Shown here: positions 29,094-33,154 of the stretch, piece after piece | Layout of the letters: each line of letters opens with the position of its first letter | Numbering within the stretch: the stretch's first letter is position 1 | Origin: Sminthopsis crassicaudata | Lineage: Eukaryota | DNA: 64,000 nt | Assembly (NCBI RefSeq): GCF_048593235.1 | Contig: NC_133622.1 | Span: 177,754,001-177,818,000 of the forward strand | Direction: 5' to 3' | Made by a program: the position numbers and the translations under genes | Notes under the pieces: model-generated | What the model saw: the letters and a program-made list of their open reading frames with translations, nothing else | The model's database searches: none | Told to the model about the DNA's origin: nothing

Positions 29094-31289
29094 ATACTTA
29101 TGTGTTGTTCTCCCAGGCAAATGTGAGTCCCTTGGGAGCAGAGACTATTCCATTTCCTTACCTTTGCATCACCATCACTTATCATAGCACCTAACACATA
29201 GTAGGCACACAATAATGACTGGTGAATAAAATGATTTAATTATTTCCCAGCCATCATTTTCAGGCTCTTGATAAAATTTAAAACAGAATAATATAATCTT
29301 GCATTTGTTCTAGGGAGCCATAACTCTTTTAATTGAATGAGAATGAGATCAAAATCCCTTGTCCAACCCTTGGAGAAAGGCATAAAAACTATATGGGAAG
29401 TATAATAACTTAAGATACTTTATGGGAGGAAATTTGCCTTCAATTTAAAAAAATTGTTTTTTTAAATTATGTACTTTTGTCATGGTCTTAATCAATAAAC
29501 CATGTATTTTTAAAAATCTCCCAAATCTCCATATAACACATTTCAGAAGGTCCTTCCTAAGGGTACATTTTTGTTTTCTCGCCCCTACGTCAGGCTAGCC
29601 TAATCAGAAAGGTGCCCTATCTTTTCACTGAAGCATCATATTTCATATCAGACAAAAGAGTAACCTTGCCGCCCATGCGGAACTGTGCTGCTTTGGGAGC
29701 TGCACACTCTGCACCACTTGTTCCAGGCAAGCCTGTCGCATCTGGTGGCCAGGTGGGAGAGGCCGAGGATGTCATGATGTCTGTCAGCCCTTTAATGGTG
29801 CTCTGGGGATCTGAGAGAGAGATGCAGAGTGGTATCTGAAGAAAAAGACTTTCTTCCCTGATGGTACCTGGAAAACAAGTCTTTCAGTAAATCTGTCTCT
29901 CCCTGAATGGGTAATAGTAAAATGAACATGAGAGAGACTTCACAAGAGCCAAACTAAGTTCTTCTGTGTTGATACAGCTCTATCTCACACTGAACAAAAT
30001 CATCAGGGTACATGTATACGGAGGGAAAGAGTTTTGTTTGTTTGTTTGTTTCCTCCCTGATGTTTAGGGTATGGGGAGGGAAGAGTTTCATAATAACATT
30101 TCTTTCTTCCTAAAAGGAAGTAAAAATTAAAACCTCTAAGAGAATATATAAGTACTAGATTTAGGAGAAGATTCAATGAATCTTTTTTTTCCCCTCTACT
30201 AAATAACTTTTCCATCTCAAAGAGGTGAAGCTCAGGGACAAAAATAAAAGACAAGAGTTACATTCAGAAACCTGCTGGAAACTTCTTTTCATGCAAAAGT
30301 TTACAACCAAGTGACTCACAGGATTTCTTCCTTGTCTTCCTTTCCTCTGTTGCCCGTGGGCCTACTCAGCATCTGGACAGCGGCAGTCTGCCTATACTAG
30401 GTCTAGAGTCTCAGCTTTTTTCAGAGCTTATTACACTGAACAGGGGCAGTATAAGTACAGGCTAAAAGGATACATCTCCCAAAAAACTAGGTATCCTTCA
30501 AGTGGATTGGACCCAAATCACTGTCAAGAAAGCTCTAAATACTTAATCACCCAACACTGGCCTAACGGGAGAAAGCACTCTGACAGAATCATGCAATATC
30601 CTGAATATTCAACAAAAGCCCTACCTAAGCAAAAGCTGCCAAAGTACCGGTGGAGAAAGCAAGAAACCTTAGGCAGTGAATGGGCCGAGTACCTTGATGA
30701 AGTCTACAAGAGGAATTAGCAATTAGAACCAAAAGGGTAACAGAACCTTGCTGAGAAAGCAGGGTAAGGGAGAAGGAAGGGGTGGGGGAACAGTTGCCAA
30801 ATGAGAATAATGAGGACCAAAGGGCTTTGGGCCAGGACTGAGTGGAAGAGAGGGGAATAAAAAGTAGAGAAAATCAGCATCATGGAAAGAGAAAAAAAAA
30901 ATCAAAAATATGTTCATTGAGCATTCAATCCAACTCAGATTCTTTTCTGGGACATAAAAGGAACCCATTTATCACACATAACTCAGGGGATAGTCCTTCC
31001 TCCTGCTATTAGGTATGTTTCATACCCCACAGAGGTGCTACCTGCCAAAGTAGGATCTCTGGCCATAGAGAGCTGCTGCTGCTATTTCATGAGAGCTCTC
31101 CCAGAATTGCTTCACACATGTTCTTCATGTGCCCCCCCCAACAAACAGCTTGCAAAATGCTTCCACTAACTCTTCAGCAACAACCTAAACATCTTGGTAT
31201 ACATGAAAATGCAATTTAAAATGAAGAAGAAAAGGGAGGGGGTAAGCTGTTTGCCTTGAAAATATAATTTTCGTTCCCCTCTTTTCAGT

Positions 31290-31293
<4 letters not shown>

Positions 31294-31379
<86 letters not shown>
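31294..31379 (-). repeat. (GA)43 microsatellite on the sense strand, starting 13 nt into the intron
   Basis: (TC)43 on + strand, counted directly. Confidence 0.95.
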
Positions 31380-31383
<4 letters not shown>

Positions 31384-31386
31384 CTT

Positions 31387-31395
31387 ACTTACAAA
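31387..31395 (-). other. NRG1: 5' splice donor of the type III exon (TTT|GTAAGT)
   Basis: Minus strand reads CCA AAA GTT T|GTAAGTAAGAAAT. The +1..+6 match is perfect, and phase 1 is what the downstream EGF exon requires. Confidence 0.9.
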
Positions 31396-32050
31396 CTTTT
31401 GGAGCACTTTGAAGATTCGTTTCAGTGGTTGGTGCCTGTGATGCTGTCATGGGTGTTCTCCCCTCAAAGTCCTGGATGGGAGGAGGGAAGGATGGTGCAG
31501 CAGAAGGCAGCAGAGAAAAGGCTAATGAGGGGTTCTGTGGGGATGGTGGGGCCAAAGGGTCAGAGGGCACTTGGGAGCTGCCACCCTGCATTGTAACACC
31601 CTGGACTTGGCCCTTGGCTTCCCGGTGGGCCCCAGGAAAAGAAGGTGAGGGGTAAACCTCTGAGGGGTCCCAGACGGTGGAGGCAGCAGTAGGATCCACA
31701 GCAGTGATAGGGTCCTGGCCTATCCTCCCTGGGTCGAGGTGAGTAGGGGTGTCATACTCAAATATCTTGTCCACAAACACCCACTTGAGACCAGCGATGC
31801 AGAGACAGAGGCTGACCAGGCAGGCCAAGATGGGCACAATGCAGATCTTCTCCGAGTTGAGGCAGCCCCGCAGGCGCTCAGCCTCCAGGCAGACACAGCA
31901 GGGGATGGCCAGGCCCACCATGGCCCCTTCTCCCCCATCCTCGGCCTGGGCCCGTGACATTGCTTCAGCTGTGGGGAGCCCATCCAGAGATGGATCTGGA
32001 CTCAGCTCAGAGGAGGGGCTGGGACAACTCTCTGCAGCTCCCTCCGACAT
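31393..32050 (-). CDS. NRG1: Neuregulin-1 type III (SMDF/CRD-NRG1) first coding exon, 219 codons + 1 nt (phase 1)
   Basis: ORF 31385..32050 reads MSEGAAESCPSPSSELSPDPSLDGLP...CCVCLEAERLRGCLNSEKICIVPILACLVSLCLCIAGLKWVFVDKIFEYDTPTHLDPG...TTETNLQSAPKV. The 8-Cys CRD, hydrophobic N-terminal TM segment and terminal TETNLQ.APK match the NRG1 type III exon. The ORF runs into a GTAAGT donor after GTT T (31393); the final C-K-stop is intronic. Confidence 0.96.
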
Positions 32051-32098
32051 GTCTGAAGCTCCCGTCTCTACAGGCTCACTTCCAAGAGGCCTGGACTC

Positions 32099-32182
32099 TC
32101 ACCACCAGGCAGGGCCCCCCCCAACAATATGAGACAGCATCTTAGAGGGGAAAATCAATAGGTTGTCTTTGGCCAAGACCAT
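32099..32182 (-). other. uORF C (27 aa, MVLAKDNLLIFPSKMLSHIVGGGPAWW*), in frame with the main CDS
   Basis: ATG 32182 in strong context (ATC ATG G), second ATG 32140, TGA 32101-32099, then 16 sense codons to the main ATG 32050. Confidence 0.6.
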
Positions 32183-32311
32183 GATCCAAGTCAGGAGGAG
32201 TTGAGGAGAAAATGAGAGGGGGGCTGAGGAAGAAAAGCAAAAACTCTTCCTGACAACAGCAAAAGGAAGGTGATTAAGCAGTTATCCGGCGTCTGCTCCT
32301 GGGCCACTTTT

Positions 32312-32338
32312 CTAGTTTCTGGAAATACCTCTGAACAT
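32312..32338 (-). other. uORF B (8 aa, MFRGISRN*)
   Basis: CCGGG ATG TTC AGA GGT ATT TCC AGA AAC TAG; G at -3. Confidence 0.55.
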
Positions 32339-32425
32339 CCCGGCTCCGCTTGGGCAGAGGGCAAAGAAGAAATCAAGGAGGGAAAAGACAGAAAGCAAGC
32401 AGAACAGCGGCCGGGCGCTGTGCGA

Positions 32426-32476
32426 TTAAGTGAACCAGTAGCCCAGGGCAAAAGACAGGGCTCTCACCTGGACCAT
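32426..32476 (-). other. uORF A (16 aa, MVQVRALSFALGYWFT*), extendable upstream to ATG 32656 (76 aa)
   Basis: Translated by hand from ATG 32476-32474 to TAA 32428-32426. It is the C-terminus of track ORF 32426..32842. Confidence 0.6.
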
Positions 32477-32573
32477 CTGAGGCAGGGGGCTGTTGAGCGG
32501 AGGAAAACAACTGGCAATCGGGAAGAGCAAAAGGCAAAACCCTGAGAAGAGGAGCGGCCGCGGGGGCAGGAGA

Positions 32574-32643
32574 GGCGGCAGCGGCAGAGGCAGCGGCGGC
32601 GGCGGCGGCAGTGGCAGCAGCAAGGGGAGCGGCAGCACAGGCA
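32574..32643 (-). repeat. Interrupted CCG/CTG trinucleotide tract in the 5' leader
   Basis: + strand ggcggcagcggcagaggcagcggcggcggcggcggcagtggcagcagc; (GCG)5GC at 32593-32609. Confidence 0.85.
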
Positions 32644-32817
32644 GCGGTAACAGCATCCTGCTCTGTTTCAGCAGCGGCGGCAGCGGACAGCGGCTGCGAG
32701 GGGCTGAATCATGAGCGAGCAGCAGGTGCCTGCTCTCCGCGCATCCCTGCCAGCGGCGGCATCGCAGGGCAAGGCTGAAGGAGGAGGGCTGGGGCCAGGA
32801 GGGCTGGGTGCCTCCCT

Positions 32818-32827
32818 GCCCCGCCCC
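32818..32827 (-). promoter_or_regulatory. GC box (Sp/KLF site)
   Basis: Exact GGGGCGGGGC on the minus strand, at the upstream edge of the CpG island. Confidence 0.6.
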
Positions 32828-32978
32828 CCACCCGCTGCGCACACCCTCCTCTTTGTCCTTCTGGAGGGAGGCACGAGTACATAGGCACTTTCTGGCTTTC
32901 CAGCTCCTTCCTTCTTCACAGTCCCTTTCTCCTTGTCATCTACACTCTCTGTCCTGTTCTATCTCTTCCCTCCTCCCC

Positions 32979-33154
32979 NNNNNNNNNNNNNNNNNNNNNN
33001 NNNNNNNNNNNNNNNNNNNNNNNNNNNNNNNNNNNNNNNNNNNNNNNNNNNNNNNNNNNNNNNNNNNNNNNNNNNNNNNNNNNNNNNNNNNNNNNNNNNN
33101 NNNNNNNNNNNNNNNNNNNNNNNNNNNNNNNNNNNNNNNNNNNNNNNNNNNNNN
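32979..33154. other. Assembly gap (N) in the proximal promoter
   Basis: N run. Confidence 1.

Follow-up and report, generated by a model that had tools for sequence, protein, structure and literature searches.

ATF4 and GCN4 are delayed-reinitiation systems with two uORFs, and the leader of NRG1 type III resembles them in that tetrapods other than the marsupial studied here carry two consecutive uORFs near the main AUG at a fixed spacing. It differs from them in that the marsupial has only one of the two and in that the last uORF stops short of the main ORF in every species compared; furthermore, we know of no stress-dependent behaviour of the NRG1 type III leader. In the case of programmed readthrough at UGA-CUAG, the likeness consists in the single in-frame UGA between two open stretches of the marsupial locus, whereas the CUAG context is absent here, the type of stop is not conserved, a coding signature is missing from both flanks of the stop, and relatives possess extra stops. 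To our knowledge, the known readthrough cases are C-terminal extensions of a CDS and not fusions of a uORF with a CDS.

The BACE1 leader with its multiple uAUGs (Nucleic Acids Res 2007, PMC1888809) shares with the NRG1 type III leader a uAUG in strong context whose short ORF terminates ahead of the main AUG. Repressive uORFs of the BACE1 type, which are ordinary AUG-initiated uORFs of dosage-sensitive genes with long leaders, are also alike in that further uAUGs are present in the same leader and in that the start is conserved and the peptide is not. In contrast to them, the uORF predicted here is situated in frame 0 with the CDS, leaves a gap of 48 nt, and displays nucleotide constraint at all codon positions. 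A full-text literature search found no description of NRG1 uORFs, and NRG1 is unmentioned in the main text of an animal CPuORF survey (PMC7530721).

Materials and Methods

The window, i.e., the whole stretch of 64,000 nucleotides that was analysed, is from Sminthopsis crassicaudata, the only marsupial in the comparison (n = 1). Its leader was compared with leaders obtained by exact-protein look-up, namely those of four non-human placentals (L002, L004/L005, L006, and L011), two birds (L001 and L007, the latter Pterocles), three squamates (L003, L008, which is Gekko, and L009), and a more distant vertebrate (L010). Taxa of the compared Logan contigs were inferred from the encoded proteins only. 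Leader positions are given relative to the ATG of the MSE start. Nei-Gojobori counts compare the marsupial with three placentals over 26 shared codons, which hold only about 18 synonymous sites.

Results

The Type III Exon of NRG1 and Its Start Codon

The following features of the window define the exon and its start.
31393..32050, minus strand: coding part of the first exon of NRG1 type III (CRD/SMDF), with the main ATG at 32050-32048
32051..32098, minus strand: spacer from the uORF-A stop to the main ATG, 48 nt, 16 sense codons, frame 0
32069..32071, minus strand: GTA codon, by alignment the homologue of the ATG that initiates MEIYSPD in placentals

Judged by its sequence, this ORF is the first exon of NRG1 type III (CRD/SMDF). 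Its best match is the pro-neuregulin-1 isoform X6 of the tammar wallaby (P0001, 91% identity). Orthologues occur throughout vertebrates, and with the N-terminal exons of type III (CRD/SMDF) in placentals, birds, and reptiles the identity is 54-67%. The exon ends at a donor GT in phase 1 (31392-31391; ttt/gtaagt), and a Pfam scan of its protein part matched no model. Placental type III proteins (P0002-P0009) begin with MEIYSPD, seven codons upstream of the MSE ATG, and the last seven codons of the spacer are homologous to this segment in the same frame. Because a GTA occupies the site of the placental ATG, the dunnart CDS begins at MSE, as do the proteins from wallaby, bird, and turtle. Between the stop of uORF-A and the main ATG there is no in-frame ATG and hence no upstream start of the placental type.

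Two side observations concern the exon. The intron that follows contains a long (GA)n microsatellite (about 31381-31295, minus strand), which starts 10 nt past the type III donor. Also, the placental contig L011 has an intact leader, but its type III ORF gives way to unrelated sequence after about 126 residues (contig about 1134-1553); the break could reflect a chimeric assembly, a deletion, or a change specific to the lineage.

A uORF in Optimal Context

Upstream of the spacer lies the uORF studied here, termed uORF-A, with two internal features.
32099..32182, minus strand: uORF-A, ATG at 32182-32180, 27 sense codons, TGA at 32101-32099
32138..32140, minus strand: second in-frame ATG within uORF-A, in the context AAGATGC, kept in all placentals
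32115..32122, minus strand: run of eight G (G8) within uORF-A, read from the sequence

An earlier note on this DNA had described an ATG at 32182 in a better context than the main ATG, opening 27 codons that end in GGGPAWW and a TGA and are followed by 16 sense codons and the main Met, so that uORF and NRG1 CDS share one frame with a single TGA between them. All of this agrees with the minus strand to the base. The uORF-A start (ggATCATGGtc) has an A at -3 and a G at +4, whereas the main ATG (GACATGT), with a G at -3 and a T at +4, is in an adequate but weaker context. As its in-frame stop precedes the main AUG, uORF-A is an AUG-initiated, non-overlapping uORF. The total length of the homopolymer (G8, or G7 then C) is identical in five independent mammal assemblies, which argues that the frame of uORF-A is not a homopolymer artefact.

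Taken alone, these features are within chance. The motif RNNATGG occurs 295 times in the 64-kb window versus 301 times expected, an open frame of 27 codons has an estimated chance of about 0.3, and placement in frame with the CDS one of 1/3. It is the conservation across the compared sequences that marks this uORF as real.

Retention of uORF-A Among Vertebrates

The leaders are arranged as follows.
This marsupial: uORF-A with ATG at -132, 27 codons, TGA at -51, frame 0; no uORF-B; CDS from the MSE ATG (0)
Four placentals, with the same layout: uORF-A with ATG at -141 (ATAATGG), 26 codons, TAA at -63, frame 0; uORF-B with ATG at -61, 11 codons, TGA at -28; CDS from the ATG at -21
Birds: uORF-A with ATGATG at -163/-160, 14 codons, TGA at -121, frame +1; uORF-B from ATG at -61 to TGA at -28; CDS from the MSE ATG (0)
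Squamates: uORF-A ATG missing from the aligned site, a mini-uORF of 2-3 codons in varying frame; uORF-B present; CDS from the MSE ATG (0)
The more distant vertebrate (L010): uORF-A not aligned; uORF-B with ATG at -61, 14 codons; CDS from its own ATG (0)

By this comparison, uORF-A is evolutionarily retained in the marsupial, the four placentals, and the two birds. All five mammals share its ATG together with the A(-3)/G(+4) context, and both birds share the ATG. The uORF is not universal, as the aligned site holds no ATG in two squamates. In our reading, the squamate mini-uORF motif GATGCTGT(AA/GA) may correspond to the internal mammalian ATG at 32140; the MAFFT alignment set this motif in an insertion. 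In all four placental loci, uORF-A ends in TAA and sits in frame 0, and 22-25 of its 26 residues match the putative human string given in the earlier note.

The frame of uORF-A relative to the CDS is thus preserved in mammals but not in birds. The frame 0 common to marsupial and placentals needs no selection, since very few indels separate them, i.e., one net difference of 9 nt. No vertebrate without a stop was encountered, as an in-frame stop is present upstream of the main ATG in 11 of 11 loci, and additional or nearer stops interrupt the spacer in six of them (TAG at -48 in the placental L006, TGA at -12 in Pterocles, TGA at -9 in Gekko, TGA at -21 in L009, TAA at -33 in L010, and TAA at -48 in L003). 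A bird protein that seemed to be stop-less (P0011/P0023, MIELRPF... ahead of MSE) was rejected because its "M" is a GTG that a prokaryotic gene caller had taken as the start, with an in-frame TAA three codons upstream.

A Second Conserved uORF and Its Loss by a 9-nt Deletion

Two further features of the marsupial spacer region become apparent from alignments with other tetrapods.
32076..32078, minus strand: +1-frame TGA, the homologue of the uORF-B stop, at -28 relative to the main ATG, with no preceding ATG here
32095..32104, minus strand: site of a net 9-nt deletion relative to other tetrapods, seen in alignments, the junction being ambiguous by a few bases

The second uORF, uORF-B, is common to placentals, birds, squamates, and L010 and is missing in this marsupial. 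It was seen in L002, L004, L006, L011, L001, L007, L009, and L010, starting at -61 (or -67) and ending in a TGA at -28, and in placentals, birds, and L010 its start is located exactly 61 nt before the main ATG. It begins with GGTAATGGAC or ATGATGGAC, with a purine at -3 and a G at +4 wherever it is present, comprises 10-14 codons (2 codons in Gekko), and encodes MDRERxQAFWR in placentals and MDCxRVKAFWR in birds. Its TGA lies within GGAGGTGAGC, conserved as GGA(G/A)GTGAGC, and uORF-B stops 25 nt short of the main ATG. In other tetrapods the spacer region is read in the +1 frame by uORF-B, and the placental uORF-A stop shares bases with the uORF-B start (TAATGG).

In the one marsupial genome available here, the deletion removed the conserved GGTAATGGAC, which carries the TAA of uORF-A and the ATG of uORF-B. 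With the loss of TAATGGAC by this net 9-nt deletion, uORF-A has become one codon longer, ending at a new TGA, and uORF-B is gone.

As a separate observation, the spacer motif GGA(G/A)/GTGAGC (32081-32072, minus strand) resembles a 5' splice site, which would be in phase 1 in frame 0, the same as the real donor. Judged by eye, a splice donor at about 32081-32072 was discarded, as squamates lack the GT and such a transcript would have no leading ATG.

Constraint Acts on Nucleotides Rather Than on the Peptide

Identity between marsupial and placentals amounts to 70-90% from -150 to -30 and to 30-67% from -240 to -150. Within uORF-A, 78-82% of the nucleotides are identical, and only 16-17 of 26 residues are shared. 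In the frame of uORF-A, pN/pS is 1.08-1.28, compared with 0.34-0.38 for the whole exon CDS and 0.06-0.07 for the CRD/TM part, and pS is 0.15-0.21 in uORF-A versus 0.48-0.54 in the adjacent CDS. The low pS relative to the CDS suggests that the nucleotides are constrained, and the pN/pS above 1 suggests a peptide without constraint. Substitutions in uORF-A are spread evenly over the codon positions (about 5/6-7/3-5), and the purifying selection on amino acids expected of a conserved peptide or micropeptide was not found in it.

Searches for a structured RNA, either as a curated family or as a stable, covarying fold, were negative for the leader. Rfam yielded no family match and only sub-threshold miRNA noise, shuffled controls fold more stably than the single sequence (z = +1.87), and the alignment fold (-20.85 kcal/mol, covariation term +0.67) joins the uAUG region to the main-AUG region through invariant columns only.

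Discussion

We consider uORF-A to be a conserved, probably repressive uORF, i.e., a brake on NRG1-III that would depend on the start codon and not on the peptide, and we assign to this reading a probability of roughly 0.6. Of the two readings that the earlier note had left side by side, this corresponds to the repressive uORF, which is favoured by the retained uATG with its context and by the constrained nucleotides, whereas the N-terminal extension is not. Owing to the optimal A(-3)/G(+4) context, scanning 43S complexes would mostly initiate at the uORF-A ATG. Ribosomes would then translate 27 codons whose amino acid sequence is irrelevant and terminate at the UGA 48 nt before the main AUG, and NRG1-III would be made only by those ribosomes that leak past or regain a ternary complex within these 48 nt. 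Capture at uORF-A together with limited reinitiation would lower and buffer the output of NRG1-III, and uORF-A could add uORF-dependent decay of the mRNA.

The uORF-A of other tetrapods extends no further than the TAA overlapping the ATG of uORF-B, and uORF-B would there be the last gate before the CDS; in the marsupial, after the 9-nt deletion, uORF-A would stand alone as the last gate. It is possible, although we propose it only tentatively, that the last ~150 nt of the leader function as a translational gate of two uORFs that was rebuilt in the marsupial lineage as one longer uORF, a compensated turnover preserving dosage control. Myelin thickness is governed by the axonal level of NRG1 type III, and changes in NRG1 expression are associated with schizophrenia risk. 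If the proposal is true, compensated uORF turnover would preserve dosage control of a gene of myelination and schizophrenia risk. Several retained uAUGs in its leader would provide NRG1 type III with a post-transcriptional control of dosage. On its own, uORF-A is one more of many uORFs in vertebrate leaders and a modest finding.

Among the alternatives, the one that survives best is that the conserved block is a non-coding regulatory element, be it a transcription factor site in DNA (promoter-proximal or intragenic) or a protein or microRNA site in RNA, in which the ORF is incidental. Constraint that ignores codon position, with synonymous sites as conserved as others, fits an element at the DNA or RNA level equally well, part of the block persists in squamates, where the ATG is missing, and the placental L006 keeps a far-upstream conserved block without its ATG. 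However, every mammal compared preserves the ATG triplet with its two context positions, both birds preserve the ATG, neither a stable nor a covarying RNA structure was found, and an AUG in strong context within a leader gets used by scanning ribosomes regardless of other roles of the sequence. We regard an incidental ORF as rather unlikely.

Less likely still is that transcription of type III starts downstream of 32182, which would leave uORF-A outside the dominant mRNA and devoid of a translational role. In favour of such a start, the G+C-rich island extends only over about 31000-33000, but blocks conserved between mammals and birds, further uATGs included, reach beyond 600 nt ahead of the main ATG, as would be expected of a long transcribed leader. 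In placentals, the leaders of type III first exons are several hundred nucleotides long.

That uORF-A encodes a functional micropeptide of 27 residues, or a nascent chain that stalls ribosomes, is very improbable. Some residues do recur in mammals and birds (M-x-L-x-x-D-x-L and a P at position 12), yet the pN/pS above 1 and the few residues shared at high nucleotide identity speak against selection on the peptide, the frame has only 14 codons in birds and is absent from squamates, and a Pfam scan of the uORF-A peptide gave no match.

Hardly credible, finally, is the suggestion derived in the earlier note from the retained frame, namely that readthrough of the TGA at 32101-32099, programmed or conditional, yields a 44-residue N-terminal extension of type III NRG1 or did so in the past: the shared frame 0 of marsupial and placentals and the single stop between uORF and CDS here would be by-products of history, since the stop differs (TGA-GAG here, TAA-TGG in four placentals), the bird uORF is in frame +1 and already stops at -121, the uORF frame shows no coding signature, and the spacer is closed by stops in L006, L007, L008, L009, L010, and L003 and is read in another frame by the second conserved uORF of other tetrapods. 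The earlier remark that TGA-G is not a classic readthrough motif was correct, and neither TGA-G nor TAA-T is a known leaky context, so that no leaky stop context is conserved among these relatives.

To return to the leader as a whole, at least five uATGs are present besides that of the putatively repressive uORF-A. Five of the eight leader uATGs in this marsupial are in frame 0 with the CDS (-606, -426, -288, -132, and -90); as the homologous placental uATGs are in frames 1, 1, 2, 0, and 0, the shared frame 0 here looks like a coincidence. Mammals, birds, and Gekko share the uATG at 32656 (minus strand, -606) together with its surrounding motif CAGGATGCTG. The Leu/Pro-rich ORF that starts there crosses a CTG/CCG-type repeat (32560-32650), which varies in length from lineage to lineage. 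Furthermore, a uORF of 16 codons is conserved in the marsupial (window 32476-32426, minus strand), placentals (-385 to -337), and birds (L001, about 251-301). Its C-terminal LGYWFT-TAA is invariant with apparently synonymous changes (TAC/TAT and TTC/TTT), and it may thus be constrained at the level of the peptide. In the placental L006, an AGG replaces the ATG of this uORF and the block is kept. A conserved motif of the leader, CAG/GTGAGA (32468-32460, minus strand), resembles a 5' splice site.
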